NCBI GenBank assembly: GCA_037447605.1
Contig: CM074811.1
Coordinates: forward strand, 1,984,001-2,048,000
DNA length: 64,000 nt
Source: Zygnema circumcarinatum SAG 698-1b
Taxonomy: Eukaryota; Plantae; Zygnematophyceae
Direction of reading: 5' to 3'
In this document: one piece after another, positions 18,854-56,748 of the stretch
How the letters are laid out: each line of letters begins with the position of its first letter
How positions within the stretch are numbered: position 1 is the stretch's first letter
Position numbers and translations under genes: made by a program
The notes under the pieces: generated by a model
What the model saw: the letters and a program-made list of their open reading frames with translations, nothing else
What the model was told of the DNA's origin: nothing
Database searches by the model: none

Positions 18854-18884
<31 letters not shown>

Positions 18885-20580: not shown

Positions 20581-21043
20581 CATGTCAAATCGTATGGTAT
20601 TTCGCATATCCCGTCGTGAAAGGATGTATTTGCACTCGGGAGAAATCTCAATGTGAAGACAGCCAGAAACGAGGATACAGACATTCACTAATTTCTTCAG
20701 TGCTACTTTTGTACACGGAATGGTAGTGAATCAACACAAACAAGAAACAGAAAATGATTGATTCAGAAGGAAAACAATTTTTAGAAGTGGTCTGTCTGAG
20801 AGAGTGTTTGCACATGAGCGCTCTTCCCGCAGGGAGAGAAAGAATAGAGTGAAAATCATCAATGACACGGATCCAATAGACTTAAAAAATCCTAAAACCC
20901 CTTTTTACAGCCGAATAGGTTTTCTAAAAACCCATTCATACCCCCACCCTCTCCCTTTTTTTTTATAATATTTCCAGCCCCAGCGAGTCTTTAGGGTTTC
21001 GTAGAGTCCCCCACTCCAATTAACAGAGAGACGAGGTGTCATT

Positions 21044-27783: not shown

Positions 27784-30700
27784 ATGGCTGCAGGTTGCCG
27801 CGCGCTGGCTCGGGGAGAGAGTGAAGGAATTCTGTGGGAGGGCGTCTGTGCGGGAGAATCAGCATGCTGCGGGGGGATCGCCTTGTATGCTGCTGTTCCC
27901 TCCTCCTGCTGTTCTTGCCTCTGTTTTTGCTTGTCCTTGCAAACTGCGCGATTTATGTTTTGCGATGCGTAATTTATTATGGTTCCGGTTCTAACGAAAG
28001 AATTTAGAACAGCGGAGCTGTGGAAATCACGGTTTGCACCGTGTGAGGCTGTCAAGGTTATTTCTTGTTTAGGCAGCGCAGTGTGTAGGATATTGGAGGC
28101 ATGTCCTGCAGCTGCAAAAGGTATCATGCGCTCTTACATGCCTGAAATAGGTGATTAATGCTTGCAATTTCTGACGCTGATTACAGGATTATCTGAAGAG
28201 CAGTCGCAGCTACTCCGACCTCCGGGATGACGACGAGGGGTTGGAAGACGAGCAGGAACGGCACTTCTCTCAGGAAGCTCTTGATACCATCCAACAGAGA
28301 AAAGACCAGAAAAACAAGTTGCAGGAGTTGGTCAGGCAAAAGAACAAGAGCAAGAACACCTACAGAGAGATAGAGGAAAATGAGTACGAGGAGTACGAGG
28401 AGGAATATGAGGAGACGAGACCTGCAAAAGAGAAAATTCATTCAAAACCTCCAATGCCGAAGGCAGACGTTAATGGTGGTCGCGCGGGGCAGCATTCGAC
28501 TGGAGGCACGAAGCTGTTCGACAGGTAAGTTCACGAGCTCATCATTTCTGTCATTGGCAAGTGAACGGTTACACGGGGTCGACTTAGAATAGAGTGTAAT
28601 TGGACACGCATACACGAACGAAGAGAGCTATAAGATAGTACTCACATACTGGCTTACCTCAGGTGTCCTCCCTGAAGCTTACCTAAGCATTCCAGAAGGT
28701 GCTTTGCATTTATTATTTCTTCTCAAAAAGCAACGGCTTTTGAACTGTTATTGTAACATGTATGTACAGCAGTTTGCGAAGTTGCCAGCTGGAGATGAAG
28801 GAGATCTTGCCGGATGTCATTTTTTTCCAGCTATTGAAGTTAGTAAAGCAATGGGTCTATGGATTGAGCTAATATCATGCAAAAAATATCAATGGGAAGT
28901 TACAAGTGGAAGAGAAGTCTCGTATTAAGTACTCGCTCGCTTCATCTACAGAAATGACTATAGGTACATCAATGTTTTTTCTTAACGAAGAAAGAAAGAA
29001 AGGAAAGAGTGCCTGAAAGTTGAGCTTAGACAAGGACAAGATACTTAAGAATTCTTTCAAAGCTCATCTAGTTGCGAGGGAGTAAAAGCATCCTTTTTGT
29101 GTATTGTTTAATACGAGCCTATTGCACACCACGGATGTTTTATCGTAGGGTTGCCATGAGTTCAAGTGCTTGACATCGATCCACATTGAGCTGATTTTCA
29201 CTAGAAAACTGTGATAGCATCCAGCAACGAACGTTATCCGCCTGTAGCCTTAATTCTTTGTAGGGCTCATAGTTGCTTCAGACCCTTCAACCACTGAGTA
29301 GTCAACCACTGAATAAGTGAAGGTTTTGTGCGTGCCATTTTTTTGTAAGCGCTTAGACGGTACATTGTCACCGTACGAGTCCTGCTTTCGCGGTTTTGCA
29401 GTTGTGTTTCGTCTCGAAGAGATAGGTGAAGCGACTAACGAGGCAGGCAGATTGCATACGTCTGAAATGAAGAATCCCAACATGTTATTGAGTCTAAGGT
29501 ATAGAGGCGTGGGTTGGCCAGCTTCGGTCAGTTTTTTGGACCTTCACAGCGAGTGTTGGCACCGCGCATTTTGGAGGAAGCGAAAGCAAGAGCGAATGCA
29601 GAGCGCATCGCTGCCAGGGAGGGGGTGGAACAAAAGGAGGTGTGTATCTTACTCCTGTTCGAGTCTGCAGTCAGATTGGACAGCAATTGTGAATGCTGAA
29701 GTAGTCGATTAGTGTACTTTTATCGACAGTCACGTTGAGAAGGTTGAGGATTTTTTTAAATTCATGGGCATGTAGAAAAGTTTTCATCTTGATAACAGAT
29801 CGACTGTCCGAATCTTGTTGACCTGTTGTAGCATGGGAAATTAATCGAGGAACTTTTGGAACGAGCACTTGTGAGACGCTACTAGGCCTCAACTTTTTAG
29901 GCAGTACTCCGGAGTGTCTGCGAAGTCTTATGGAGCTCAATTGCTTGTTCGCAAAGGAGACTGACTTGTTTTTGTGCTTGTGTATGCAGAGGCTGAAAGA
30001 ACAAAAGGCGCGTGCTGTACAGAGCTCTAGTGACAGAAGGAGACCTGCATCAGGCGGACAAGAAGCCGCTCCTTCATCACAGCGAGTGCCAGAGGTAAGT
30101 ACTTGCATGAATAAGCGAGCAGATGGCATCTGACTTCGTCCAAGTCATGGATTATGCAGGTACAGGAGAGTGAGTGTCGTTTATCAGGTTTGATTTCATG
30201 TATCTCACTATGAACCATCTTCTGTGTAGTTTTTTGGCACCTGTTGTCTCTGCAGGGTACGAGCATCTCAACAGTGATTCTTTTTGCTTAAAATTTCCCT
30301 AAGCTGGTTTCTGAAGACCGTGGTAGTTTTGCTAGCTGCTTTAATTGAATGGTGTATACCTCTCGTCTTTTTTTCAGAAAGTTATCAAGGCCCGCCAGTT
30401 AAAGGCTGCTCGAGACTACTCGTTTCTATTCAACGATGATGACGGCGCTGCCCCGCAACCTTCTGAAGCGCATGAAAAAAGAAAGGCGGCAGCAGCCCAA
30501 GAACAACAGGCAATCAGGCAACCGTCAGGTCAGCCTTCAGCATATCATAGTCTGCTAGCCACTAACTCACTGACTGATCCAAGACTCATTCAGTCGTTTC
30601 TCTCTATTTTTCCTTCCTCTGTCTATTTCCTCCTTCTTGATGCTTTTTGTCGGTCATGGCGGTGGAAGTGCTAGAGATGGTGAGAGCGTGCACTACTGGA

Positions 30701-32782
30701 GATTTCATGAGAAGTCTATGAGAAGTCTATGCATGACCAAAAGTTGGGAAGCACCCGAGTGAGGCCATTTTCTTCAGAGAAAGATGCTAAGGCACAACTC
30801 TCGACTACCGTAGGCTATGTAGTACCTTCATTTGAGGTCTCTGCAACCCCTACTTTTTGTTCTATTTAGTGGCTCAAGACTTCAAATACTGTCAGGAGTT
30901 TTTGAAAGTGCTCAAAGCATGACCAATTGAACCGTCTGGCAACCAATCAGGTGACAAGCCAAGGAGCCATGCATCTCCTTCCTCAACCCGTCCTCGTCCT
31001 TTAGTTCCAAAGTCTTCGGAAGTAAGAAGGGATCGGCCTCCAGCACAGGCTTCAGACAGGCCCAAGCCATCACTTCATCGTGAAAAAGAAGGGCATTCAT
31101 CTGCCGGCCTCAGAAATGGTTCTGCTGTTTCTGGGCGGTCAGCTGAGGCTAAGTCTTCTGAGCATGTTCGAGGCAGACCATTGCAGAAGTCAGGTGCACC
31201 CAAGCAAAGCTCCGGCTTATTGAGACCTGTAACATATGAGAAAGTGCAAGCAAGGCAAGGTGGTCCAAGAGTAGCAGAGAGTGGAGGAGCACCTGTGGGT
31301 AGGGGAAGCACAGAAGCTTTGAGGGATTTAGTGTCAGAGAGAACCGTTGTGAGGGAGAAGCCGACTGCACGACCAGGAGACGCACGTCCGGCAAGTCAAG
31401 GGATGCTCAACGGAAAGCCGAAAGCTGCAGAATCTGCTCAGGTGTCTGCTCTCACTTTGTTGAAATTTCTTGAAGAAACAGATTGTTGAATTTGTTGAAG
31501 GGCCAATCTGAGGAAAATTGTCGTACAGTATTGCAGCGTACTGGCGGATTGAGGTGCGTTAGCAGATGTTTATGTTTTTTGTTTCACCACGCTGAAGGTA
31601 AAGGAGCTTCAAGCTTCTTGCACTTTGCCATGAGGCGAGTGCCTTAATGCCGAAGTCTTGCCTTCTAGTTTTGCTGGGAAATGTTCATGGGCCTGTGTTT
31701 TAATGCGTTTTTACTGCCGTGGTGCGGTTGACTATTGAGCAGCGGAATAGAATCGAAGGTAATCGGGTCCCCATTTCCCAGAGCAGGCCCATGCCGCCCC
31801 CGAAGCAGCCGGCCCCCTTGCGGCCTGCACTGAAGGGGCCGCCGCGGCAGCAGCAGAAGGCTGGAGGGCTCCAAAGACCAGCAGAGACGCCTTTGCGACG
31901 GAGTGGAGAGAGGCAGATGGAAGTATCGAGAAGGCCGGAGTCGACCGAAAGTCGGCCTCCTCCACTCAAGAAGGCTGCAGTTTCAAGAAGGCGAGAGGAA
32001 GAGGACGACGACGACGATTCAGCGGACTCGTTTTTGGAGGAAGATGATTTTGACATGAGAAAGGGGGGAAGATCGGCATTAAGCTCAGTTCTAGGAATGT
32101 TCAGGTAAGGCTTTTTCTGTGTCGAGGAATCATTGCACCTAAGTTTTGTGGAGATAACAGGACTCGTTAACTGCATTACAAGAGGTACGCGAGCTGTGTC
32201 TGTTTCGTGCCTTACTGAGTGGATGTCTCGTCAACTATCTCCAAGGTAAGCTTGAGGATCAGGAATGGCGCGAAGGAGCGGGGTAAATACTGAATAGTCA
32301 CAGTAGGTTTTACTGAAATGAGTTGGTTTTGGAAACCACTTGAGCTAATCATCTACTGAAGTTTTTGGAGGGAGCAGGCGGAATTATAGAGAGAACCACA
32401 CACGTGATTATGATGAGGACAGTGACGATGGGGCTATGGAGGTTGGCTGGGATCAAGTAAGGCGAGAGGAGTCGAGGAGGTGAGACTTCTGGCTGATCTT
32501 TGAATTCTTGCTTGAGTGGCTCCTCTGAATCTCTCACGTCATTAGTCTGTATAAGCTATTCCGAGTAGCTTTCTTATCCTGCCACCATGGAAAGTGCTAT
32601 TGCATGATGGCCTTTGCGAGGGACTGAAGTCGCTTCAGAACAGGTTGGACCGAGGTCTGTTGGTGACGTAGTGCTGTTTCTCATGCAGTGCGAGGGTTGC
32701 AAAGGAGGAGGATGAACGCGAAGCCGCGTTGGAGGAGGAGAGGGAGAGGCGGAGACTGGAGAAGAAAAAGCGGAAACTTTGA
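27784..32782 (+). CDS. SPT2: SPT2 chromatin protein, multi-exon
   Basis: SFGQFFGPSQRVLAPRILEE and KAARDYSFLFNDD resemble plant SPT2 motifs. C-terminal SPT2 domain: SSVLGMFR...DEDSDDGAMEVGWDQVRREESRSARVAKEEDERE...KKRKL*. The 5' exons (ATG 27784) are tentative. Confidence 0.85.
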
Positions 32783-34198: not shown

Positions 34199-35337
34199 GG
34201 CTGCCGCCGAGGGGAGGGAGGACGAAAGAAGTTGCGGCGAGGGAGGGCAGGAAAATGAAGCAGGTTCAACCTTTGGCCGATTCCTGGGTCAACAGTGGAA
34301 CCGCCACATAACTGCGAATAGTTCATTTGTTGATCTGAATCGTGCCGGTGCGTTTCCATGACAGTCGTTCCGCGACTAGTTGTGCTTCCCGTTCGTCCAT
34401 GTGTCCGCAGCGGCAGACAGTTTTCTACCAGTTTTCTTGTTCCAGTTTCCACGTGCACCCGTGTATACATTTCAAGACTGCCACGTGAACCATTCACAGC
34501 CCGCCACGTGCCAGATTGCTGGCCATATTTGCCACAGAGGCATAATAGTCACCCTCTGAACAGAACGACCTCGTGCTGACGTGGCACACGCTCTGTCTCT
34601 GGTGTTTCCAACAATGGGCCGATCTGACGACGACCAGTGCTGTTCTTGGCTCGCCACGTGTCAGAAGTCAGCCGTATCCAAAACAAATTTGTAGAAAGCG
34701 AAACTTGATCGCATCGCATGGCAGCGACGCCATTGGCACGAGGGGCGCCCGGACGACCCTGCAGGTATGGATGAAGGGAGAAAGGGAGGAAGGCGGACCG
34801 GGAGACAGAGGCACCGTCTGCCCTAATCCCGCCCGTCCCATTCTCCTTCGAGCAGATCGACCCGCAGTGCCAGACACAAAAATTAACATGAAAATGTTCC
34901 GACTTCTCACCAAAGGCAGCTCATAACATTCCATAGCACAATTTTCAACTTATCACAAATCTCGACATTTGAATCGCGATCATAGTCTGCTGCCCAACCA
35001 AAGGCCGCGATCGACTGTCTGCATGACGCCGCAATGCCAACGAGACACGAACGCAGACGACAAACCATCCATCCCCCAAGCGTGTCTTTATGCATCCCCT
35101 GTGCATGCCTGCCATGGTGCGTCCACTCCCTCATCATGCCATGCATGTGCAGGTACGTAGAGCCATAATAAGTTTGACCGCCGCCGCCTCAAGGTGCCGA
35201 GGAGGGAGGAGGGGCGTCACGCGCCCCATGGGGCGCTCTCGCATGCGACAAAAGTCGCATGCCTACGTGCACGTGCTGCTCGTCGGGACGCAGACTTTGG
35301 CCGCGGTCGTGTACTGCGCCCTGAGGGGTGTCAAGAG

Positions 35338-35450
35338 NNNNNNNNNNNNNNNNNNNNNNNNNNNNNNNNNNNNNNNNNNNNNNNNNNNNNNNNNNNNNNN
35401 NNNNNNNNNNNNNNNNNNNNNNNNNNNNNNNNNNNNNGGGNNNNNNNNNN
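35338..35450. other. Assembly gap (100 N + ggg + 10 N)
   Basis: Runs of n. Confidence 1.
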
Positions 35451-35544
35451 TAGGCAGTCTACGGATCCTGCTCGTCGTTTTTAATAGTCTGCGTGTTGCT
35501 GACTATTTCCGTCATGATTAGCATTCGAAATAGCACTGACCTCC

Positions 35545-36689
35545 TCCAGTGCATACGTGACGGAGCAGTTGCTCGCACTCGTCACATTCACCACAGTGCC
35601 TCCCGGAAGGGGCCTGCTGCAGTTCAGACCCTGAAATGGAGGGAGAGGGAGAGGGGTGCAGACAGTTGGTCTGATGTCACGCAAGGCATCACACGACGCT
35701 TCGTGGTAAGAGATTTCCAACAAGACAACAAGATTTTGCACACAAAATTTGCTCGAAAGAGAACGTGCTTTCCTTTCCATAACTTCTCAGCACGATGCGT
35801 TAGCACCAAGTCCTTGAACTGACCTGGTTTTGTGCTGTGAAAGCCGCCTTGGGGATGCCATATGTTCCGTACAGACTTGTGCAGGGTAAACTGGTATTCA
35901 CTGGGACAGTATAGCTCAGCAGGCGTCCACCTAGAAGTACAGCTGCAACGAAGAACCAAGACGATGAAGTCAGCCAATTTTTAAACAGATTCAATAAACA
36001 AGAGTTACAAAATTGTATCGGTAAAACTTCGATAAAACAATCAGCTAACGTTTGAAGATATATGCACAGAATGCCTTGACGTTTGCCCCGGGCTTGCGAG
36101 TCTGTCGGGTGCGGACCGGGGAGGCAGGTGAGGGCCTCTTCGGACGCGTCCGGCGAATAGCCGAGAGGGCAAATGCACATGTACGTTCCGTTGAGCGCTG
36201 CGTTGTCCACGCATGTGCCCACGCCGCACGGATTCCGTGATGTGAACGTGCATGGAGACGCTGCCACGTGGCAAACAGGCGTAAGGCATTAGGGCGTGCA
36301 GCGGAATCACAAGAGGAGAAGGGTAATAATAAAAGTAAGCTATCGTGAAGCAAAAAAAGAAAGGAATGCTGTGGTCTGTGGCCCTTGATTTGGAGATTCA
36401 GCTGCACGAGGACAAATGCAGTGTAAAGTTGCAGCAGAGTCGATACGTGCATAGTCTTCATGCAGCATCTTGAATAAAAGCATAAGCGTAGGCATTTTTC
36501 TTACCGGGTGCACATGTCTGCGTTCCGTCTGAGTTCGTAACGTTCACAAAGTTGTCAGCACATTCGCACACGTTTGTGGTGCCGGAAGGAAAGCAGACGC
36601 CGTTGCCGCAGGGGTTCATCTGCCCCGGGCCGTACGACAGCCGCAAGACGCGGCGGGTGAAGCTGAAGGAGTTGCAAGGGTCGCTTGCT
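35545..36689 (-). CDS. Two EGF-like exons and Cys-type LysM exons of the modular gene
   Basis: NPCGNGVCFPSGTTNVCECADNF...TCAP; SPCTFTSRNPCGVGTCVDN...YMCICPLGY...TCLP; YTVPVNTSLPCTSLYGTYGIPKAAFTAQNQ/GLNCSRPLPGGTVVNV; then CSVTYALEE, the start of a probable second LysM. Confidence 0.75.
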
Positions 36690-37227
36690 GCACCGCTCGG
36701 GAAGAAGGGAAACAAAGGAGAACAGATAAACTGCTTGCTCTGGTGATCAAGTGGTACTACTTTCTTCCGAGTGTGGTTAGGCCAAAGAAAGTCGATTCTG
36801 AAACGTTCAAAACCTTTTCTGCCAGGACGCTAGTTTTCCATGGACGGAGCACTTTGACAACAAAGCATTTGGATTTGGAACTCCAGTGCATCGGCATGTT
36901 TGTATAATGTTTACGACATGGAAGACTACGTCGAGCATTACCGGACCACCATGCAAAACCAGGCAGTGAAAGAAAGCGTTTGTCAGGTCGCAACCATCGG
37001 GACTTGCTACAGTTAGTTTTTCATGTGACGTCAAGTCAATATAAAGGGTGAAGGTCTTCCACAGCAATCCCACAATGCATGCACTGCATCCAACTGCACA
37101 AAGATTCTCAGCAGCAACTAGTTTCCGTAATCTGGTATGTCATAAAGGCATCGGCTTCAGTCACCAAGGAAACGACAAAAGCCAGCAGTGCCTGTTCAAA
37201 GAACAAGCAGACACGTGGCGTTCCCAC

Positions 37228-38605
37228 CTGGAAGTTGAACGATTGGGATGAGTGGCGGTCTGACATTGATGCCGCAAATTCCGTAGCCGCCGGTCACCTT
37301 CATGTACATGTAGCCTTTGTCGCCCCAGTTGGGTCCCCAGGAATTGCGGATGATCCAATATGGCGGCGCAGCCGTCAAGTCGTAGCCCACAACGACCACG
37401 GCGTGGTCCACACCGTCGGAGAAGCACTCCTCGTCATCGAACACGCCCTGCAACAGGAAGAACATACAGCCTTGCTGAGAAAAAAACAAATGCAGTTGTA
37501 CATCAAAATACCAACTAAACCGTAAGAGGTCAGAATCAGTGACTAAGGACGCTCACCATTGCCGGGTTGTAGTTCAAAAAGCTGTCAGAACTTGCTTCGA
37601 CAGCAACCACTGCTGGCTGTTGCTGGAGAGCCAGCAAAAGGCCAAGCCAGCCGTTCACCTGGACACTCTCGTATGACAAAATGCGTACCCTGACTTCCTG
37701 CATTTTGGCGGCACAAGTCGGGTGCACTATTCAATCAAAGGCCTTGACCATTCCAGAATACTATTTCAGATATCAAGGTATGTACGTATCAATCACGAAC
37801 GGGGCATCGCAACTGAGGAAGGTGCGACTGCAAAGACGAATAAAAAAGAAGCAAACGAAGTTGACGAGCCTTGAAACTCAGAATCGGTTGCAATTCAAGG
37901 GTACATACTTGGCCCACGTTGCAGCTCGATGGACCACTATAGTTAGCGGAGGGGATGAGGCCAGCGGTAGCCGCGTAGTTGAGTGCGTCAGCTGGCTGGC
38001 CGCTGCTGCTGCAGTTAAGACTTGGTGCTGGACAGCTAAGGAGCTGGTCTTCAGCAAATCCAAGCACGGGCTGCCTCAGTGGTTGCCTTCCCGCGTTGGC
38101 AATATACCAGGCGCTTTCGACCGCTGAAATGGCTGCAAATATCCAGCATGTACCTGAAAAGGGAAGAAAAACTCATCTCCTCTCAGGAACAAGTCCTTGT
38201 AGACTCAAAAAAGTGCTATGCAATTGCTCCTCTCGCACGAACAGAGTAGTGGATGGCCTTAAATTCCTATCTAGTTTGCGGAATCTAGAAGGGTCAGCCT
38301 GTGAAACATAAAGACCTGGTCGCATGGCCAGCAGGCTCAAAACTTGGATACTCTGACAGAAGACCACATGGGTCTGGAGAATTCTAAATCTGAGTGAGAG
38401 GTGAGCGAGCACGCACTGCAGCCCCGCTGGTCCTTGGCGGGCGGCACGGCGCGCTGCCGGGCCCAGTTCCAGTTGGTGGCGACGAGCCACGACGGCGCGT
38501 CGTCCTCCGACGCGATGTACCCCGCGCTCGCATATCTAAATTACGCGTTCAACTTCGAGGACGCGTTGGCGGCGACAGGACTCGTCAGGCCGAAACCGCG
38601 CCCCT
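37228..38605 (-). CDS. Papain-family (C1A) cysteine protease domain, 4 exons, part of the modular gene
   Basis: WNWARQRAVPPAKDQRGC/STCWIFAAISAVES (oxyanion Q, catalytic C), QQPAVVAVEAS, DHAVVVVGYD (catalytic H), YWIIRNSWGPNWGDKGY (catalytic N), GICGI. Confidence 0.93.
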
Positions 38606-38865
38606 CTGTGCAGGTTTAAAGGGACACAGATAAACGCCAATTAAAAACAAAGGCCTCTTCCTACTCCCTCGCAATAACACGTTCTGCAACATCTACGCTG
38701 CAGTGTTCAACCACTCATGGCAAGATCCTTGTGTTTATTTGGACTGCTTCGTGCATTTGAGCCGCTTCTGTGACTGTGATCAACTCTAGACTTCGTTCAA
38801 CTCGGAGACTACAAGAGGAATAAAACGTCACTCCATAGAAGACCGCCTCTGTATAAAAACATACC

Positions 38866-41800
38866 AAATGTGCAAGTGGCTGGAGACTCCCTCGCGGAAT
38901 ATCCCTCCTCGCACGTGCAGGCCCCATCCAATCCGGAACAAAGGCCGCGGCCTCCGCATGCTCCGCGGGGCTGCGAAGCTTCGCAGAAACTGCGGCACTG
39001 CGAGGGGTCTTTCTGGTCGGGCGCAGACCCGCACTTGCTCGGCCACGTGTCGTCGAAGGTGAAACAGTTCCCAAAGAACAAATCATTGCACACTGGGACG
39101 CCATTAACGGTAAAGGACGGAGTTCCGGAAAAGTAGTTGTTGGCGAATCCCATGGTGGGATCTATCACTGAGTCAAGTTGCAAAGCCAATGGGCCAGAAA
39201 GAATGTTGTTTCTTAAGTCTCTGCCAAATGAAAGACAAGCGCATAAGAAAATTGGCATGGCAGAGCATTACATCCACATTCACAGGATTGGCGCAGTGTG
39301 GGGTTCCACTTCCTCATTCAGCAGTGGAGAAACAGTTGAGGAACCGTTTATGGCTATCCTCCACTCTAGTGCAGTAACTGTGTGACTTGATACCCATCAT
39401 AAATAGCGAGAACAACATGTCCTTGGGTTAGTGCTGCCATTATAACTCGTTACCCGTTCTCCTCAACTTTCAGCCTTTCCTCTCGTAGCAAAAACCCCAA
39501 TTGAACGAGCAGTTAGGTACAACTTGTGTAATCAAAGACGCTTTCCGTGGAGATCACACCAACAAGGTCATCCATGCCATGTTCGTTATACGTCAGGTAC
39601 ACTAGTATCCAAAGGAAGACATACAACTATATTAATAATAACGGTGAGCAATGCATTCGTACATTCGAACAAGCTTAGGGATTAGACTGGAATGACAGAG
39701 AAATCACAAGTCAGAAAAACTCTGAACCGTATGCATTTGGATTGGCCAGATGACTCAAGTGCTCATTCAGAAAATTCTGTAGTTCCCATGAATAATTCAA
39801 TGAGCTTTTCTAAAAGGAGACTGGTTCGTCGTCATTAAACACAAGGGCAAGGGAAAAAAACCACTAGTGTCAAACATCTTACAAGGAACTTAGGCTTCTG
39901 AAATTGTTGAACGTTGGTGGAATAGTGCCCACGAGACTGTTGGACGACAAATCCCTGTCAAGGAGCGGAGAATACGCAAAAAAATAGATCAGGGATGTGT
40001 CTTGTTATGTAAACTACGGCAAAAATGGAAGGCATTCTTCCAACAATTAAGAAATTTGCCTCGTAGAGTGTAATTTCCTCGAGTTCATGACAGTTCTGAT
40101 ACAGCTTTCAGTGAACAAGGTAGTCAGACAAGCCATGCCAAAAGAGGGGTAACATCGCTCCGACAAACTCATCCAACAACAAGTCTGAAAGACACCAAGG
40201 TTTCGGGTGACCCATGTCACGCGCAGACTGTTAAGAACTGAAACGGTCCATTCTCCATTACAATCGAGTCTGAAAGTTAAAATGACATACGCAGTAAGAA
40301 GGCTTCGCATGCTCGCCAGAGATGATGGAAGGCTCCCGTTCAAATTATTGTCAGATAAGTCTCTGCAACCAAGGACAGCTCCTTGCATTAGCCAGTCAAG
40401 TAGAACTCGTATACTCTGTTCAGGGGTCCTTGACGCACAAATGGTCATGCTCCACGAGGCTCTAGCATGGAAACCATTGCCTTTTGGGGTAAAACAGATA
40501 AGAATCAAATCATAAGGATAGTTGTGTAGCCAATGTCTTTGTTCAAGTTTTGTAACGAACAAAGTGAGAGAGACACTTTTTTTCTCTCGGGAACATACAT
40601 TTTTATTGAATATAAAATTGTGAGGTTGAGGAGCTTTACTCAAAACGAGAGAAGTTTACATTCCATACATGTCATGCCATCTATGCTCAACCCTAGATGT
40701 ACAGCCGGATGACGACGAGCATTTCAGTAATGATAGCATATAAAACCTACGTAACTACCTTGAAAGAAATCAACGACCGTGTGTTCAGCGGTTGCCTTCG
40801 TACATGCTTTATAGTAGTAGTTGGGGTTACTTTTGAAAATAGACAGCAACACTATGCTACAAGAAAATTTGTAAAATAACAAGGAACAACATGGTGTGAG
40901 TCTCACAGAGTCTGGACATTTGTAAGGTTCCCAATAGATTCCGGAATGCCACCACTTAGCGCATTATTGTCCAGCTTCCTGCTTTTCCTCGTGATACAAA
41001 GCCAAAAAAAAGCATAACATTCAACGTGTCACCTAACGACATGAAACCCTCCAAATAATCAAAGCATGACAGCGACTAAGTAAGAACCTCCTATAGGCTC
41101 GCATCCGTGGTGAAGGTGGAAAGGTGATATCGAATATCTTTCAGTATCAAATGTTCAAAGCGAAGGATGTGGTAAGCCATAAGAGCCGTCTATTTTCGTA
41201 ACTTAGTTTTCTTATTCAACTAAGGGAAGAACGCGCTGTAAGGGAAGCAATCAATTCCGGCGCGTTACCAATCAAATGCAAATAGTAAGGTCAGGAAAGA
41301 TTTATTTACAGCACTCTAAGGTTTCGAAGGTTCCCAATTGAGGCTGGGATCACTCCACCGAAATTGTTGCCGCTCAAGTCCCTAAACACAAGCAGGTCTC
41401 AAACAAAGCGGTCAGTCCTCAGTTCCTATGTCAGAGCAAAGGATAAAATCTCTCGAACAGCTGAAAAACTTAGGCAACTGCACAATCTAACTGCAAGCAA
41501 TAAAAAGAACTCAAGAAACGTATCCTTGTCATGATATTGCATACATTAAAAATAGTGAGGTTGAGGAGCTTTACTCAAAACGAGAGAAGTTTACATTCCA
41601 TATATGTCATGTCATCTATGGTCAACCCTAGATGTACAGCCGGATGAAGACGAGCATTTTAGTAACGATAGCATATAAAACCTACGTAACTACCTTGAAA
41701 GAAATCAACGACCGTGTGTTCAGCGGTTGCTTTGCTACACGCTTTATAGTAGTTGAGGTTACTTGTGAAATAAGACAGCAACGCTATGCTTCAGGAAAAT

Positions 41801-43346
41801 TTGTAGAACGACATAGACGACACAAGTTTGAACAAGATGGTGCGAGTCTCACAGCGTCTGGACATTTGTAAGGTTCCCAATAGATTCCGGAATGGCTCCA
41901 ATTAGCGAATTACTGTTCAGCTTCCTGTTTTGCCTCTCGATGCAAAGCGAAGAAAACAGCATAGCATTCAACTTGTCACCTAACGACATGAATTCCTCCA
42001 AAGAATCAAAGTATGACAGCAACTAAGTAAGAACCTCCTATAGGCTCGCATCTGTGGTGAAGGTGGAAATGTGATATCTAATTTCTTCGAGTGTCAAAGT
42101 TCAAAACGAAGGATGTGGTCAGCCATAGGAGCCGTTTATTTTCGTTACTAAATTTTCTTATTCTAGTAAAGGATAAGGAACGCGCTTTAAGGGAAGGAAT
42201 CAATTCCGGCACGTTACGGATTAAATGCAAACAGTAAGGTCACGAATGATTTATTTACAGCACTCTAAGATTTCGAAGGTTCCCAATTGAGGCTGGGACC
42301 ACTCCACCGAAATTGTTCCCGCTCAAGTCCCTAAACACAAGCAGGTATCAAACAAAGCGGTGAGTCCTCAGTTCCAATGTCAGAGCAAAGGATGAAGTCT
42401 TTCCACCAGCTTAAAAACTTAGGCAACTGCTCAATCTAACTGCAAGCAATAAAAAGAACTCAAAAACGATATCCTTGTCGTGATATTGCATACAGGATTC
42501 TGCTCCGACTGCATTCATAACATTGAATGCCGCTTTTGCAGAGTCCGATGTGTACACTCACAGCTCTTGCAGAGTATCCAAGAAACCAATGGAGTTTGGG
42601 ATGCTTCCGTTCAGTTTGAAACCAGGAAGCTTTCTGCAAGGAGAATAGATTGTTTTAAAGATAACGTCCATCCAAAGCATTATCCTAACCAGCTAAAATG
42701 ACACTTTCGAGTTATACTACTGGAATTATTCAGAAATAGGGCTCTCAGCAATACGACTTTTTTAGGTATTCACTCAGACGAAAGCATGCCACACTACTTC
42801 AACGTCAGCCTTCTGCCCTTCAGGGCATTAGCCATGAATGAAGCAGCGAGGGGATATACGCACTCAAAACTGAGTCGCAAGACTTGCCCAGTGGCCATTC
42901 TCCCAAGCATGAAAAGCACTAAACTGTCATGTCCGGAACAAGAGCCTAACCTATGAAAAGTCTAACACACAGTGACGTTATCTTTTTCTCAGCGCGTTCC
43001 TGAAAACTGCCTTGCCGTCACCGGAACTGACGACACTCCACGGTGAAGCGAAATCGCCCATAAATGTAGATACTGCACTATGTGTAAGGACCGGATCCCG
43101 CATGCAATCAACATTTTACGTAGAGGAAGCAATTGAGAGACTGATAGGGAGCCATAACCTAGTTTCCTACGATCCATGTAATAGGCAATATAAGGAAGAG
43201 TAAGTGGACGTACACTGAAACCAGGACCTGATTATTATCACACTTCACTCCGCTCCATCGGCACAAAGAAACACCAGGTTTCCAGTCGACTAACTTGTTT
43301 CTAGGATCGCTTACAATTGCCGCTTTGAAACTCAGAAGAACTTGTT
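38866..43346 (-). CDS. Second LRR block: LRRNT exon, seven 72-nt LRR exons and an LRR-cap/EGF exon
   Basis: 43214-43346 EQVLLSFKAAIVSDPRNKLVDWKPGVSLCRWSGVKCD. 72-nt exons at 42562-42633, 42259-42330, 41853-41924, 41310-41381, 40907-40978, 40291-40362, 39883-39954 (e.g. DLSGNNFGGVVPASIGNLRNLRVL). Then DLRNNILSG...CRSFC...CGGRGLCSGLDGACTCEEGY. Confidence 0.9.
40610..42495. repeat. Tandem duplication of a ~945-bp unit carrying two LRR exons
   Basis: gtgaggttgaggagctttactcaaaacgagagaagtttacattcc at ~40620 and ~41555. Paired exons DLSGNNFGGV(I/V)PASIGNLRNLRVL and KL(D/N)(N/S)N..IPESIGNLTNVQTL occur in both copies. Confidence 0.92.
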
Positions 43347-43678
43347 CTGCACAATAGCATAGAAGATATTTTACATTACTTACAAGTGAGCGTTCTGTTG
43401 ACCTCTCTAGGAATCTGATGCAATATGATAACTTTTAGTGTCGTGTGCAGAGGATTATTACAGATCTCTCGTCAAAAAGAAACTAACTCCCCATCCGATA
43501 GCCAAATGATAACAAAACAAGAATTGACTGCAACACAACTTCGTAGTGATCTTCAAGTTCAACGATTGTGCAGACTCGAATCCAAACATTCCAAAATGAT
43601 CAGAAGAAAGACAGGGGCGAACTGTAACACTACAAAACAGAAGCCATAGGAGGTGGCAAGGAACAAGGCGAAGAGTAC

Positions 43679-45151
43679 CAGCAGCGGTAAGGGGAGGAGG
43701 GAAGGAAGGAGAAGCTCTCGGAGGGGGCATTCGAGGAGGGGGTCGAGGGCTGAGAGGAGGTAGACGCGAGGGAAGGGGAGGAGGAGAGAGGCTCGGAGGT
43801 GGTGGTGAAGGAGGAGGAAGGGGTGGTGGAGGACGGGGAGGAGGAGAGAGGCTCGGGGTGGTGGTGAAGGAGGAGGAAGGGGTGGTGGAGAAGGGCTTGG
43901 AGGGGGTGGTGGAGGAGGAGGAAGGGGTGGTGGAGAAGGGCTTGGAGGGGGTGGTGGAGGAGGAGGAAGGGGTGGTGGAGAAGGGCTTGGAGGGGGTGGT
44001 GGAGGAGGAGGAAGGGGTGGTGGAGAAGGGCTTGGTGGAGGGGGTGGTGGAGGAGGAGGAAGGGGAGGTGGAGGGGGTGGTGGAGGAGGAGGAAGGGGTG
44101 GTGGAGAAGGGCTTGGAGGGAGTGGTGAACGCGGAGGACGGGGAGGAGGAGAGGGGCTCGGAGGGGTGTGGTGAAGGAGGAGGACGGGGTGAAGGGCTTG
44201 GAGGGAGTGGTGAACGCGGAGGACGGGGAGGAGGAGAGGGGCTCGGAGGTGGTGGTGAAGGAGGAGGAAGGGGTGGTGGAGAAGGGCTTGGAGGGGGTGG
44301 TGGAGGAGGAGGAAGGGGTGGTGGAGAAGGGCTTGGAGGGGGTGGTGGAGGAGGAGGAAGGGGAGGAGGAGGGGGTAGGCCGCGGAGGAGGGGAGAAGGG
44401 GTGGTGAAGGCGGAGGAAGGGGGGGAGGAGGAGGGAGGCTCGGAGGTGGTGGTGAAGGAGGAGGAAGGGGTGGTGGAGAAGGGCTTGAGGGGGTGGTGGA
44501 GGAGGAGGAAGGGGTGGTGGAGAAGGGCTTGGAGGGGGTGGTGGAGGAGGAGGAAGGGGTGGTGGAGAAGGGCTTGGAGGGGGTGGTGGAGGAGGAGGAA
44601 GGGGTGGTGGAGAAGGGCTTGGAGGGAGTGGTGGAGGAGGAGGAAGGGGTGGTGGAGAAGGGCTTGGAGGGAGTGGTGAACGCGGAGGACGGGGAGGAGG
44701 AGAGGGGCTCGGAGGTGGTGGTGAAGGAGGAGGAAGGGGTGGTGGAGAAGGGCTTGGAGGGAGTGGTGAACGCGGAGGACGGGGAGGAGGAGAGGGGCTC
44801 GGAGGTGGTGGTGGAGGAGGAAGGGGTGGTGGAGAAGGGCTTGGAGGGGGTGGTGGAGGAGGAAGGGGTGGTGGAGAAGGGCTTGGAGGGGGTGGTGGAG
44901 GAGGAGGAAGGGGTGGTGGAGAAGGGCTTGGAGGGAGTGGTGGAGGAGGAGGGCTTGGAGAGGGAGTGGTGAACGCGGAGGACGGGGAGGAGGAGAGGGG
45001 CTCGGAGGTGGTGGTGAAGGAGGAAGGGGTGGTGGAGAAGGGCTTGGAGGGGGTGGTGGAGGAGGAGGACTCGGAGAGGGACGTCGAGGAGGGGGTCGAG
45101 GACTCGGAGGAGGTGGACGCGGAGGAAGGGATGGAGGAGGCGATGTTGAAG
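43679..45151 (-). repeat. 1473-nt exon of 45-bp minisatellite units encoding a Ser/Pro-rich (HRGP/extensin-like) stalk
   Basis: Flanked by cag| and |gt, phase 1-1, no stops. The unit translates PPPPPSPSPPPLPPP, with internal compensated register shifts. Confidence 0.85.
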
Positions 45152-45798
45152 CTGCAGTAATTCAGGGCACTTTATGAGTTTCCGTTCATACTTAAAGGTG
45201 GATTCACTTCTTCCATAGATTACATATTCTAATCAAAGCACGTCCCTATTAACGTTCTGGGATGATGCAGAACGAAATCGAAACTATTCAGAAGAAAATA
45301 GAGTTACTACAATTCTTTTGTCGTGATATTTTATCATCGACGTGCCTCTCAGGCATCTCCACAGAAAATCAGATGCCTATGTCACTTATCGAGCTACGCA
45401 ATTCTGACTTTGAAAGCAGCAAGGTCAAACTCGCAGGGTATCTAGCTACTGCAAATGGGGCTGCGATATGTTATGGCTTGCACAGGATTGTAATTCATCG
45501 AGAAGATTATCGCAAGCTTCAAACATGATATCGAAACGGCACTTTCGATACATCCTAATAAACTTTGCGCCATTTACTGAATGAGATTGCAGAGTTCACC
45601 ACGTAATGCTTGCGACATGCTTCTATAAGTTCGAGAATTGAACCACATATATTGGCGGCATCACATGGATCGCATTAAGTGTGCTCTATCAACAACGACA
45701 GTGTAAAAGTTGATAGCAATGCGATAGTTTCCACAACCTCTGCCACCCTGTACTTTTCCTTTCTTGTGAGTATTTACAAGCAGCAAGTTGCAACTCAC

Positions 45799-46760
45799 CA
45801 CACGTGCCCGATGCCAGCGCATATCCCTTGTCGCATGTGCACGTGGCCGTGTCGTACCCGCACGTGCCGCGGCCCCCGCACGCTCCCTCGGGCGAACCGC
45901 TCTGGCAGAAGGCCGCGCAACCTTGCGAAGGTCTCTGCGCTTGAGCTGCGCCACATCCTGTGATATCGCGATAAATGCAGTTGTTGTTGTTGTAGTTGGA
46001 GGAGCAATAAGGTTGCCCGTTCTTTGTAATGTTGATTGGCCCGGAGAAGTAGTTGTATTGGAAATCTAGGTCCTGAAGGTAATCGCTAGCAAGAGTTATG
46101 GAGCCAGTCAATTTGTTGTTGTTGAAGTACCTGATGACAATAAGGGTGGCGCGTTAGAGGGAGAGAGAGAGAGGAACTTTCCAACAAAACCCATTCAAGT
46201 CTTCCTTGTGTCATAGCCACTGAAAACATTCGCTCGTGCTGTCTGCAAAGTTTCTGACTCCTTCACGACCCTACACAACCTGCAGCCTGCAAATAGTGAA
46301 CCCCTAAATCTCTAAGCCTTTCCCTACACCCATTCTGCCTGCAATCCCATCAACCTTGAACCCACTAAACCCCCATAGCTTCTGAAGCCTTTAACTGATA
46401 AGCCCCTAAAACCCCTCGAACTTAATGGCCAGTCTGAACCCTAGCCCTAATCCGTAAACTCTAAATCCTAAACTCTCTACGACAAAGTCCAATCTCTTGC
46501 ATGCAAAAAGTGCGCGTTATTGGGCGTCAAAAAAGCCCACGCCGTGACAGAAGTGACCAAAAATATGGCATAAACTTAAAACTCATGCAAGCGCGAAATA
46601 AATGTGATAGTTTGAGAGGTACAAATGCTCGGCCGAGAGCAAAAAATTCAAACTGCAGATGCAGCGTTATCGATGCAGTGGTGCTTACAGGTACTGCAGT
46701 CCGGTGAGTTTAGAGATGAAGCCGGACACTCTCCCCTCCAGTTTGTTGCTGCTCAGGTCC
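45799..46760 (-). CDS. End of first LRR block plus Cys cap and EGF-like domain
   Basis: 46689-46760 DLSSNKLEGRVSGFISKLTGLQYL; 45799-46130 YFNNNKLTGSI...LDFQYNYFSG...NCIY...QRPSQGCAAFC...CGGRGTCGYDTATCTCDKGYALASGTC. Confidence 0.88.
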
Positions 46761-47477
46761 CTATAGACATACGCAACGACAAAAAGTTCAACAAAAAGGA
46801 TAATGCTGGTTCTGGACTGAACAGGATTAAATCAGGTATCCAACTCTACGTTCTATCGAAATCTCAAACGCAGTCTCACAAAAAGGGAGTGCGAGATTAA
46901 AATTTTACTCGCATATATTGCAAGATGCAAAGAAGTCACTGCACTTATGATTTCAGAAAAAAAGCCATACAAATTCATACAAATCATACAAGTTTGCGAG
47001 GTTCCCAATAGAGTTCGGGATGACGCCCCTCAGAATTAGTCAAGCGTCTACATGTGAATTGGCATCCACCGATCTTCATAAAAAGCTTCGCGAGCTCCAC
47101 GGATGTTTCGCAGAAAAAAAAAAGAAAATTGAAACTCGGTTGAATGATTGCTCAAATGCAAACCGAAGCTCCAAGTTGCCACGTGCCAACCGACCAATGA
47201 GCAGCTTCGCGGCATCTCCTCCTCCATGGGGGGCGGAGGCGGCGGAGGGCTCTGCGCAGCATATGGCATGGAGGAGGAGATGCCGCCATGGGCCACGCGC
47301 AGTTGACACGACACGGGTCCTCTCAAGGGCGGAAGGCACCGCTCGCAGGCACCGCCAGGAGGAGGAGTGGCGCAGGGCAGAATTTGAAGTGAATCTGACA
47401 CTGCGACGTGATTGGTTGGAAGATTCTCGACACGTCAGTATGATCTGATACGGGGCGAGGGGCTTTCAGCTTCTTAA

Positions 47478-50425
47478 ATACTTACAAGTATTGCAGATTC
47501 GCAAGGTTGCCGATAGAATCCGGGACAAACCCACTTAGGGAATTATAAGCCAAGTCTCTGCCAAAAATTAAAAAAAAACTAGGCACTGAATAAACATGCT
47601 GCCACGACTAGCATTTTTATCACTGGCATTCCTCTGTTTGGCATTTCCATCACTTTCATTTCAGATTTCTGGGGAAAATTACTCACAAGTAGGACAGAAT
47701 CGCAAGGTTCTTGATAGAATCCGGGATAGACCCTATTAGGGAATTTGAAGACAGGTCTCTGCCAAAAAAAAAACAAGGCACTGAATAAACATGCTGCCAC
47801 GACTAGCATTCAACTCACTGGCATTCCTCTGTCTGACATTTCTATCTCTGGCAATTCAGATTTATGGGGAAAAATACTTACAAGTATTGCAGATTCGTAA
47901 GATTGCCGATAGAATCCGGAATTGACCCCGTTAGGGAATTATAAGACAAGTCTCTGCCAAAAATTAAAAAAAAACTAGGCACTGAATAAACATGCTGCCA
48001 CGACTAGCATTTTTATCACTGGCATTCCTCTGTTTGGCATTTCCATCACTTTCATTTCAGATTTATGGGGAAAAATACTTACAACGTTTGCAGATTCGCA
48101 AGGTTGCCGATAGAATCCGGGACAAACCCAAATAGGAATTATAAGACAAGTCTCTGCCAAAAATTAAAAAAAAAACTAGGCACTGAATAAACATGCTGCC
48201 ACGACTAGCATTTTTATCACTGGCATTCCTCTGTTTGGCATTTCCATCACTTTCATTTCAGATTTATGGGGAAAAATACTTACAAGTATTGCAGATTTGC
48301 AAGGTTGCCGATAGAATCTGGGATAAACCCTGTTAGGGAATTAGAGGACAAGGATCTGCCAAAAATAAAAAAACATGGGAATTGAATAAACATGCTGCCA
48401 CGACTAGCATTTCTATTACTGGCATTCCTCTTTCTAACATTTCTATCACTTTCATTTCAGATTTATGGGGAAAAATACTTACAACCAAAAAAGATTCGCA
48501 AGGTTGCCGATAGAATCCGGGACAAACCCAAATAGGGAATTATAAGACAAGTCTCTGCCAAAAATTAAAAAAAAACTAGGCACTGAATAAACATGCTGCC
48601 ACGACTAGCATTTCTATCACTGGCATTCCTCTGTTTGGCATTTCCATCACTTTCATTTCAGATTTATGGGGAAAAATACTTACAAGTATTGCAGATTCGC
48701 AAGGTTGCCGATAGAATCCGGGACAAACCCACTTAGGGAATTATAAGACAAGTCTCTGCCAAAAATTAAAAAAAAACTAGGCACTGAATAAACATGCTGC
48801 CACGACTAGCATTTCTATCACTGGCATTCCTCTGTTTGGCATTTCCATCACTTTCATTTCAGATTTATGGGGAAAAATACTTACAAGTATTGCAGATTCG
48901 CAAGGTTGCCGATAGAATCCGGGATAAACCCACTTAGGGAATTATAAAACAAGTTTCTGCCAAAAATTAAGAAAAAACTAGGCACTGAATAAACATGCTG
49001 CCACGACTAGCATTTCTATCACTGGCATTCCTCTGTTTGGCATTTCCATCACTTTCATTTCAGATTTATGGGGAAAAATACTTACAAGTATTGCAGATTC
49101 GCAAGGTTGCCGATAGAATCCGGGACAAACCCACTTAGGGAATTATAAGACAAGTCTCTGCCAAAAATTAAAAAAAAACTAGGCACTGAATAAACATGCT
49201 GCCACGACTAGCATTTCTATCACTGGCATTCCTCTGTTTGGCATTTCCATCACTTTCATTTCAGATTTATGGGGAAAAATACTTACAAGTATTGCAGATT
49301 CGCAAGGTTGCCGATAGAATCCGGGACAAACCCACTTAGGGAATTATAAGACAAGTCTCTGCCAAAAATTAAAAAAAAACTAGGCACTGAATAAACATGC
49401 TGCCACGACTAGCATTTCTATCACTGGCATTCCTCTGTTTGGCATTTCCATCACTTTCATTTCAGATTTATGGGGAAAAATACTTACAAGTATTGCAGAT
49501 TCGCAAGGTTGCCGATAGAATCCGGGACAAACCCACTTAGGGAATTATAAGACAAGTCTCTGCCAAAAATTAAAAAAAAACTAGGCACTGAATAAACATG
49601 CTGCCACGACTAGCATTTCTATCACTGGCATTCCTCTGTTTGGCATTTCCATCACTTTCATTTCAGATTTATGGGGAAAAATACTTACAAGTATTGCAGA
49701 TTTGCAAGGTTGCCGATAGAATCTGGGATAAACCCTGTTAGGGAATTAGAGGACAAGGATCTGCCAAAAATAAAAAAACATGGGAATTGAATAAACATGC
49801 TGCCACGACTAGCATTTCTATTACTGGCATTCCTCTTTCTAACATTTCTATCACTTTCATTTCAGATTTATGGGGAAAAATACTTACAACCAAAAAAGAT
49901 TCGCAAGGTTGCCGATAGAATCCGGGATAGACCCAAATAGGGAATTATAAGACAAGTCTCTGCCAAAAAGTAAAAAAAAAGGCACTGAATAAACATGCTG
50001 CCACGACTAGCATTTCTTTCACTGGCATTCCTCTGTCTGACATTTCTATCTCTGGCAATTCAGATTTATAAGGAAAAATACTTACAAGTATTACAGATTC
50101 GTAAGGTTGCCGATAGAATCCGGAATTGACCCCGTTAGGGAATTATAAGACAAGTCTCTGCCAAAAAGAAAAAAAAAAGGGCACTGAATAAACATGCTGC
50201 CACGACTAGCATTTCTCTCACTGGCATTCCTCTGTCTGGCATTTCTATCTCTTTCATTTCAGATTTATGGGGAAAAATACTTACAAGTATTGCAGATTCG
50301 CAAGGTTGCCGATAGAATCCGGGATAAACCCCGTTAGGGAATTATGAGCCAAGTCTCTGCCAAAAATTAAAAAAATACTAGGCACTGAATAAACATGCTG
50401 CCACGACTAGCATTTCTATCACTGA
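47478..50425 (-). repeat. Tandem array of 15 ~200-bp units, each one 72-nt LRR exon plus intron
   Basis: Exon low coordinates: 47486, 47687, 47882, 48083, 48284, 48483, 48684, 48885, 49086, 49287, 49488, 49689, 49888, 50086, 50285. Each is bounded by ttttggcag| and |gtaag (one gtgag). Consensus DLSYNSLSGFVPDSIGNLANLQYL. Confidence 0.95.
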
Positions 50426-50753
50426 CACTTTATGGAATGGAGACATTCAGAAATTTTTCAACTTTTTCTGGTTACCGATGGCAGGTGAAATGGTTCCTTC
50501 AACGCCGTAGGACCATAAAACTCCATGACATAACATGACTAGCATTTCATAAGGCAGGTTAACTGGGAGAGCGTCAGAAGAAGAAAGGGCCGCGGGCAGG
50601 AGAAGGACTGCTCCGGGCGGCATTTTCTAGCCGCTTTCTGAGGAGTCTGCTTCCCGCAGACCCTCCTCGCAGCCTCGGGCTGCAGTTCAGCAGCTATGGA
50701 ATCCGCGGAGCCCCCAACATCACAAGCGGGTCTTCAGTCAAAGTGTGGCTCAC

Positions 50754-51128
50754 AGCACAGTAACGCGCCCACTTGCGTCGCATGTGATATCGATCCAGTT
50801 GCTGCAGAGGCGGTTACTCGACTTCCAGGAGGAGAGCTGTGAAGGGTTGTTGAATGCCGCTTTGACAGCGAGAAGTGCGTCCCCTGCGCCCAAGCGCAAG
50901 CAGGTGCAGGATTAGATTGAGGCCGCGGTCCGCTTCAAAAAGCACAAAGAGAGGCCATGCCACGGGCAGGCCGCCTCTCCCCTGCTTCCATAGAGGGCGG
51001 GCGGGCGGGCCGCGGCGGCTCACTGTCTCGCGGGTCGATGGCCTGAGCGGCGGCTTCGCGCGGGGCGGCGGCGGCGGCAAAGAGGAGGAGCGCCGCCGCG
51101 AGAGAGAGAGAGACCGCGCGCGCGCCAT
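50754..51128 (-). CDS. Signal peptide exon and first LRRNT exon of the modular gene
   Basis: 51024-51128 AVSLSLAAALLLFAAAAAPREAAAQAIDPRD; 50754-50883 RDALLAVKAAFNNPSQLSSWKSSNRLCSNWIDITCDASGRVTVL, ending in phase 2. Confidence 0.85.

Positions 51129-53024: not shown

Positions 53025-56748
<3,724 letters not shown>

Follow-up and report, generated by a model that had tools for sequence, protein, structure and literature searches.

Does this locus encode, as the initial annotation proposed, a secreted protein in which leucine-rich repeats, EGF modules, a papain-type protease and LysM domains are joined in one chain? Within the window, meaning the whole stretch of 64,000 nucleotides analysed, the minus strand carries in succession a signal-peptide-like exon, an LRRNT-LRR-cap/EGF block, a Ser/Pro stalk, a second LRRNT-LRR-cap/EGF block, a C1A protease, two EGFs and LysM-like repeats. 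Sequence inspection and a phase check confirmed this domain order and most of the proposed splice phases, but the supposedly uninterrupted reading frame is broken by a TAA at 38543-38541 and, as assembled, by lesions in the 5' half. On balance, and with guarded confidence, we read the locus as a transcribed copy, disabled by a nonsense codon, of a secreted LRR-EGF-C1A-LysM gene family; this copy carries an additional LRR-EGF head, mounted on a Ser/Pro rod. The family's host is probably a streptophyte alga of the zygnematophyte type.

The body from the second LRR block to the LysM-like repeats

Contigs from DNA runs and from two RNA-like runs were compared with the assembly at positions below 41200, the assembly gap excluded, and the two RNA-like runs contain spliced joints from the exon at 40978-40907 down to the LysM-like exons. 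The second LRR block opens with an N-cap exon (43214-43346; Pfam LRRNT_2, E=1.9e-10), followed by seven clean 72-nt LRR exons (39883-42633), two of which derive from a 940-bp duplication. The last three of its LRR introns are documented by RNA joints, and the intron from 41310 to 40978 by a loose RNA end. The last LRRs, a Cys cap and an EGF, hereafter EGF2, follow at 38865-39220, supported by profile and RNA joints; the predicted structure of this cap-EGF module (pLDDT 84) gave no significant match in the PDB and TM scores of at most 0.46 in the structure atlas.

The linker exon (38417-38605), whose splice sites are defined by RNA, leads into the mature protease and includes the oxyanion-hole Gln. 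It is followed by exons with the catalytic Cys (37909-38153; Pfam Peptidase_C1, E=6.7e-6), with the middle of the domain (37557-37697; RNA joints, 54% identical to the homologue L003 from another alga) and with the catalytic His and Asn (37228-37447; Pfam E=5e-18, PDB cathepsin K E=1.6e-15). All four residues of the proposed Q/C/H/N set are thus present, downstream of the TAA. Both S1-site glycines (papain positions 23 and 65) are Ser here. An I29 prodomain was not detected by Pfam, and the span between EGF2 and the mature domain, about 45 residues here and equally long in L003, leaves no room for one.

Past the protease the two further EGFs hold up, both with RNA joints: an EGF-like exon with 6 Cys and a long first loop (36505-36687), recognized by pattern and unmatched by Pfam EGF, and an EGF4 exon (36117-36260) found by Pfam EGF with E=2e-7. 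The LysM domains are putative. A degenerate first repeat, joined by RNA, starts at 35824-35942 and fits the pattern by eye, without the G-D-T, and the exon at 35541-35630, placed by an RNA joint, holds its end and the start of a second repeat that reads Y-x4-G-D-T-C in our hand translation of a loose RNA end from run X7; exon by exon, Pfam, NCBIfam and PDB returned no LysM match. The stretch 35451-35540 is intron, and the next exon, beginning with this canonical G-D-T-C, lies in the assembly gap (35338-35450), which according to the loose RNA end contains at least one further LysM exon. The probable last coding piece (35263-35337) has a LysM-type end and a TAG; its acceptor would be hidden in the gap.

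Outside the signal peptide no 19-residue window exceeds a KD of 1.21 and no kinase exon was seen, in agreement with the initial annotation. The locus thus shows no transmembrane segment, with or without a kinase, of the kind that marks LRR receptor-like kinases and proteins.

An in-frame stop ahead of the protease

The TAA lies 21 codons past EGF2, some ten codons short of the mature protease and ahead of every catalytic residue, in a frame set by RNA-defined splice sites. DNA contig X1 #5 (38223-38917) crosses it with 0 differences, and the RNA contigs X7 #21 and X8 #27 span the linker exon, both of their differences being a 9-nt run-over into the intron. In run X7 all A>x and T>x changes were assigned to places other than the TAA, and altogether the stop is found in three runs, which come from three studies. 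Assembly error as its source is ruled out by these DNA and RNA contigs. The gap-free alignment of the RNA contigs also excludes a GT..AG micro-intron of 9 nt enclosing the stop, and an alternative acceptor at 38536 would give the wrong frame. In a neighbouring FGGY kinase gene TAA stands directly after the end of the Pfam profile, where the gene would naturally terminate; on the strength of this one gene we take the codon as a true stop here as well and discard a non-standard code with TAA=Gln. From the stop to the catalytic Cys the frame contains no Met, and L003 reads open at the position of the stop.

The open frame from start codon to protease that a C1A enzyme needs is interrupted in both DNA and RNA, and most likely no protease is produced from this copy. 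A working sensor-protease cannot be upheld at this locus, since the protease lies behind a TAA that reads verify. The stop is young, because the protease, EGF and LysM exons beyond it are free of lesions and have kept their splice sites. The copy is transcribed and spliced, and translation meets the TAA before any catalytic residue; with at least 8 junctions downstream of the stop, the mRNA is a likely substrate of nonsense-mediated decay (NMD). The copy is probably decaying while a close paralogue stays expressed.

The 5' half and the Ser/Pro stalk

The signal peptide proposed for exon 1 (51024-51128) is recognizable as a hydrophobic segment with a KD19 of 2.05, in a shifted frame of the assembly; the sole ATG, at 51128, is separated from this segment by a (GC)n(CT)n microsatellite and misses its frame by 2 nt, and exon 1 has no Met in the signal-peptide frame. 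The first LRR N-cap exon (50754-50883; phase 1 to 2) was assigned by eye from its 2 Cys and matches nothing in Pfam or NCBIfam. It is followed by a relic first-LRR exon of 72 nt (50451-50522), bordered by GG/CT instead of AG/GT, and by an array of 15 LRR exons (47486-50356) arranged as a 201-bp exon-plus-intron tandem repeat, in which one exon (50157-50086) contains an in-frame TAA and another (48153-48083) measures 71 nt. Downstream lie a defective 67-nt LRR exon with frameshift and stop (46981-47047), a clean 72-nt LRR exon (46689-46760) and, by sequence and profile, the last LRRs, Cys cap and EGF of module 1 (45799-46130). The cap/EGF exons of the two modules are 38% identical, with 10 Cys and a Pfam EGF_2 E of about 0.01 each. 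Of the two LRR blocks described as complete, the second merits the term, whereas the first, where the lesions other than the linker stop cluster, includes four defective LRR exons, the relic among them, all of them phase-2 cassettes that could be skipped in frame.

The stalk exon (43679-45151) comprises 1473 nt or 491 codons with phase 1 at entry and exit, in keeping with the proposed Ser/Pro stalk of about 490 residues, but its Pro-rich frame, about 70% Pro and composed of Pro, Ser, Leu and Arg, switches at least 5 times, with a net in-frame result. The stalk shifts, the exon-1 slip and the 71-nt exon all lie in homopolymers or microsatellites, where the assembly may be wrong. Land-plant LRX/PEX proteins likewise combine a secreted LRR head with a Ser/Pro-rich stalk and have neither transmembrane segment nor kinase. 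In an LRX protein a C-terminal extensin with Tyr/Lys cross-link motifs follows a single LRR domain, whereas here a cap-EGF intervenes after the LRRs, the stalk is internal, made of Pro runs without such motifs, and a second head and a protease follow.

Matching splice phases are what would join head and stalk to the second block, and the read evidence covers only positions below 41200. Two genes are accordingly conceivable, an LRX-like LRR-EGF-stalk gene from 51128 to about 43460 and an LRR-EGF-protease-LysM unit beginning at the second N-cap, as the stalk donor GTACTC is weak and free-standing LRR-EGF-Ser/Pro proteins exist (P0016). We consider this division very unlikely: the phases agree, 1 to 1, the 332-nt spacer between stalk and second N-cap ends in a clean acceptor and offers neither an in-frame Met nor a signal peptide for a second start, and the TAA disables the protease regardless.

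Block 2 is flawless from LRRNT to EGF2 and the defective cassettes of block 1 are skippable, an observation that runs against our favoured reading, as do the possible assembly errors and the lesion-free exons past the stop. Combined with a stop that sits cleanly between domains, the state of block 2 lends itself to a rather unlikely but sizeable possibility, a working, protease-less secreted dumbbell of signal peptide, LRR-EGF head, Hyp-rich rod of about 490 residues, second head and 21-residue tail, which would cross-link or sense two wall ligands like a two-headed LRX, the protease exons now serving as 3' UTR. Another alga naturally produces transcripts for an LRR-cap/EGF with a Ser/Pro tail behind it (P0001/P0016), and in the LRR array the difference per site is 0.24 for ligand-face codons but 0.07 for introns. 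Such a protein, however, could exist only if the slip in exon 1 and the shifts in the stalk were artefacts of the assembly, the many downstream junctions would generally predict NMD, and the relic and stop-bearing LRR exons indicate relaxed selection. The intact and spliced exons past the stop, together with one unlisted difference of run X6 within 38467-38743, could instead point to a full-length sensor-protease made here by stop-codon readthrough or encoded by an intact allele in other strains. This too seems very unlikely, given that UAA followed by U is generally the least leaky context, that TAA is an ordinary stop in the neighbouring gene and that the runs of three studies share it; the linker exon has phases 1-1, yet none of the listed joints leaves it out, and its omission would cost the protein the oxyanion-hole Gln.

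A family of LRR-EGF-protease genes

DNA and RNA both contain a paralogue of about 90% identity. The 16 listed differences to it, a small and filtered sample, comprise 8 synonymous and 8 non-synonymous changes, which suggests past purifying selection and counts against the favoured reading of a disabled copy. L003 shows LRRNT-LRR-cap/EGF-linker-C1A with the same order and intron positions as here before its sequence ends within the protease; because its exon order is shared and its linker open, intact kin exist. The one-chain LRR-EGF-papain design finds support as a trait of the family, as RNA joints at our locus connect LRR-cap/EGF via the short linker to protease, EGF and LysM exons and L003 repeats the arrangement up to the protease. 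Two Closterium loci (L001, L002) encode the cap-EGF, with no protease found nearby. The databases yielded no full-length protein with the complete architecture, structure atlas searches led to generic LRR and C1A clusters, and homologous-protein searches and a metagenome scan gave no matches with length-limited queries that make this result uninformative.

The cap-EGF module recurs with 33-45% identity and a conserved Cys pattern in LRR-cap-EGF proteins of Closterium and Mesotaenium and in the algal receptor kinase P0014, which runs on into a transmembrane segment and kinase where our locus has the protease. A cysteine protease of the Volvox extracellular matrix, the subject of work by Amon and colleagues from 1998 that PMC9818292 cites, resembles the family in being a secreted green-algal enzyme; it is reportedly induced by pheromone and wounding, carries chitin-binding repeats and is tied to signals of defence and mating, and it reportedly differs in having no LRR or EGF modules. 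We found no paper on the architecture or the family as a whole, and the claimed lack of precedent holds to that extent; for Chlamydomonas reinhardtii a catalogue records C1A+LysM fusions, in part including EGF (C1A with two to three LysM; LysM/SRCR/EGF/FTP/C1A), which are absent from vascular plants and listed neither for Klebsormidium nor for Chara (PMC6362431, Suppl. Table 3). Likened by domain content, these fusions share with our locus the papain domain and LysM repeats, in one case also EGF, in a green alga, whereas this in silico catalogue lists no LRR-cap-EGF or HRGP rod with them (PMC6362431). By analogy only, the expanded family of modular secreted papain-like proteases in Aphanomyces (C1A-CBM1, C1A-CAP, C1A-ML), active by activity-based profiling, also couples C1A through a disordered linker to a binding module, but in an oomycete pathogen, with other binding modules and no LRR, EGF or LysM (PMC10084794).

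Intact members would be secreted and held by their LysM repeats on GlcNAc polymers such as chitin or peptidoglycan, an HRGP-like rod anchoring them in the wall. The LRR-cap-EGF arm, known as a module of algal receptor kinases, could bind a protein target or, alternatively, stand in for the absent I29 prodomain in shielding the active site, and the C1A domain would then cleave nearby microbial or wall proteins. Immunity, mate recognition and wall remodelling, suggested by the initial annotation, are candidate roles. We put forward as an unlikely extension that the gene arose when a receptor-type LRR-EGF head, whose array of 15 cassette exons evolves fast, was added to a fixed LRR-EGF-papain-LysM body, and that the young stop now turns the product from a sensor-protease into a two-headed wall protein without a protease; low readthrough, or an intact allele in other strains, would still yield the full one-chain sensor-protease. 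If true, the latter would be an undescribed kind of extracellular recognise-and-cut defence.

Most likely, the locus is a damaged member of a real, hitherto undescribed gene family. With its protease cut off by a verified stop it is a poor entry point to that family, and its use lies in the evidence of quick turnover given by young tandem LRR exons, a close paralogue and a fresh nonsense change, a turnover that fits a role against other organisms. The family itself unites an LRR ectodomain, LysM, an HRGP rod and a papain protease, which in land plants belong to separate proteins.

Exon structure and splicing of the mosaic locus

Six-frame translation and a splice-site scan place the mosaic gene (35263-51128) on the minus strand, its introns having GT-AG ends. 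Exon 1 with the start codon region (51128-51024) is followed by the first LRR N-cap exon, an LRR array (47486-50356) of 15 LRR exons forming a 201-bp tandem repeat plus two more LRR exons, a cap+EGF exon with 10 Cys and a Ser/Pro stalk exon of 1473 nt. Downstream of the stalk, a second LRR N-cap exon (Pfam LRRNT_2, E=2e-10) leads into block 2, in which seven intact 72-nt LRR exons precede a second cap+EGF exon (EGF2). A linker exon of 189 nt then separates block 2 from a C1A protease in three exons (Pfam, E=7e-6 and 5e-18), two EGF exons with 6 Cys each (Pfam, E=2e-7 for one) and LysM-like exons that continue into an assembly gap (35338-35450). Profile searches of the spliced model were performed exon by exon, and the joined translation served frame checking only.

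The protease carries the oxyanion Gln as well as the catalytic Cys, His and Asn, and the translated locus has no transmembrane segment, both as described in the initial annotation. Judging from the sequence, its specificity may be changed, as the two papain S1-site glycines (23 and 65) are Ser here (38417-38153 and 38010-37990). The I29 prodomain is absent, with a linker of approximately 45 residues in its place.

Two sequencing runs, X7 and X8, were taken as RNA because they contain GT-AG joints missing from the DNA runs and their intron bins are empty. Reads were compared with 35451-41200 only. Their contigs join the block 2 exons (40907>40362, 40290>39953, 39883>39220), block 2 to the linker (38865>38605), the protease exons to one another (37908>37696, 37556>37446) and to the tail EGFs (37228>36687), the two EGFs (36505>36260), and the EGFs to the LysM-like exons (36117>35942, 35823>35629); loose contig ends back 41310>40978 and 38417>38153. 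Each junction is used, which, given short contigs and a paralogue of ~90% identity present in DNA and RNA, does not imply a single molecule across all of them. The claimed domain mosaic is borne out by the sequence itself, with splicing in RNA seen for its 3' two-thirds. Half of the listed coding differences to the paralogue (8 of 16) are synonymous; its DNA depth is similar, and it is expressed in X7 and X8 (38028-38110, 39149-39210). At 36584, in the first of the tail EGF exons, a further run, X6, has an in-frame 6-nt insertion that may be allelic or paralogous, and the intronic stretch 36795-36986 is a short high-copy repeat (depth ~7200 in a contig of DNA run X1 vs ~190 for single-copy DNA).

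The gap-side flank 35451-35540 is intron. At 35540, an X7 contig runs out of the LysM-like exon and continues for at least 255 loose letters, which, translated by hand in phase 0, start with G-D-T-C-T-S-V and complete a canonical LysM start. This exon is missing from 35451-41200 and therefore lies in or beyond the gap, although the contig could stem from the paralogue. Two LysM repeats would fit the estimated size, and more are possible. The main result, the stop codon described below, lies ~3 kb upstream and is unaffected.

A stop codon ahead of the protease

Given the RNA-defined splice sites, an in-frame TAA (38543-38541) lies in the linker exon, 21 codons past EGF2. DNA contig X1 #5 (38223-38917) matches without differences, and the depth over this stretch amounts to one contig. 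The full linker exon is also spanned by spliced contigs X7 #21 and X8 #27, whose two differences are precisely those expected from a 9-letter run-over into the next intron. Since the A>C, A>G, A>T and T>C counts of X7 are fully accounted for at other listed places and T>A and T>G are nil, the TAA in X7 is settled. TAA is evidently a stop in this genome, because one neighbouring gene, encoding an FGGY kinase, terminates with TAA at the close of its Pfam profile. No Met lies between the TAA and the catalytic Cys. The proposal of a full-length working sensor-protease is therefore not supported for this locus, which as assembled cannot make the protease-bearing protein.

The FGGY-family sugar kinase gene occupies 53025-56000 on the minus strand, and its last exon matches Pfam FGGY_C. 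By eye, putative genes for a fatty acyl-AMP ligase with carrier domain (21000-26300), a two-domain NAP1-like protein (13800-19300), a prenyl-diphosphate synthase (6000-10700), a translin-like (2770-5200) and an SPT2-like protein (28000-32000) were also recognized, as well as a contig-internal telomere-like heptamer x5 (19869-19904).

Condition of the 5' half

As assembled, the sole ATG and the signal peptide are offset in frame by 2 nt. Both splice sites of the first LRR exon are gone, an array exon reads TAA in place of the CAA of its siblings, and two further LRR exons are off-length (71 and 67 nt), so that of the two LRR blocks annotated as complete only block 2 stands. Within the stalk, the Pro-rich frame changes five or more times without a net shift. 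The indels in microsatellites and homopolymers are possible assembly errors; substitutions and a 5-nt loss look like real lesions. All four defective LRR exons are phase-2 cassettes whose skipping would keep the frame. The putative joins from head to stalk to block 2 are backed by matching phases and by an LRR-cap/EGF-Ser/Pro product that another alga naturally transcribes.

Units 5, 6 and 9 of the array do not differ even in their introns, thus the array copy number may be inflated. A higher-order duplicate (49959-49560 and 48554-48154) shows 4 differences, and in block 2 a 940-bp duplication of ~87% identity (40612-42500) doubles a pair of LRR exons. Among eight distinct array units, ligand-face codons show 0.24 differences per site, other codons 0.12 and introns 0.07.

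Relatives, fate of this copy and putative role

The window is algal rather than human and probably stems from a streptophyte alga related to Closterium and Mesotaenium, in which the best protein matches lie (33-45% identity). Among database proteins, none carrying the complete chain was retrieved, and no paper describing the architecture was found in full-text literature covering mostly non-subscription papers. L003, a genomic locus of another organism (565-4054, 38% GC, short introns), encodes a signal-like exon, LRRNT, ~13 LRR exons, cap+EGF, an open linker and two C1A exons, matching our locus in exon order and intron positions and ending inside the protease. The fusion thus predates this copy, making the stop a derived feature. 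The LRR-cap-EGF module is shared with an algal LRR receptor kinase (P0014); its C-cap+EGF part (38865-39220) also occurs in LRR proteins that stand alone in Closterium and Mesotaenium. The predicted structure of this part is confident (pLDDT 84), without a significant solved match in the PDB.

Amon et al. are said to have described in 1998 a wound- and pheromone-induced Volvox cysteine protease with chitin-binding repeats. In its way of working, the architecture is likened to a lectin-tethered secreted papain, LRX proteins and receptor kinases being excluded by the tested features. For Chlamydomonas, C1A+LysM fusions, one with EGF domains, have been catalogued; vascular plants are said to lack them (PMC6362431). 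In Aphanomyces, secreted papains of modular build that carry binding domains are active (PMC10084794).

This copy yields spliced RNA with a stop ahead of the protease, and we lean towards NMD of the transcript and decay of the copy. A stable, protease-less two-headed wall protein appears rather unlikely: the TAA falls between domains and the four defective LRR exons are skippable in frame, but the out-of-frame ATG and the stalk frame switches argue against it as assembled. Improbable by comparison are two separate genes and, to the same degree, stop-codon readthrough or an intact allele, for which X6 offers one difference somewhere within 38467-38743 and against which the TAA stands in DNA and spliced RNA.

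Overall, the locus is most plausibly a transcribed but damaged copy from an algal gene family that is real though undescribed; its likewise undescribed architecture is backed by RNA and has a homologue in one other species. From domain knowledge, intact members would first be secreted; LysM would tether them to GlcNAc polymers and the rod to the wall, the LRR-cap-EGF arm would bind a target or shield the active site for the missing prodomain, and the C1A domain would do the cutting. Owing to LysM and the fast change of the LRR face (0.24 per site vs 0.07 in introns), defence appears the likeliest putative role of the family.
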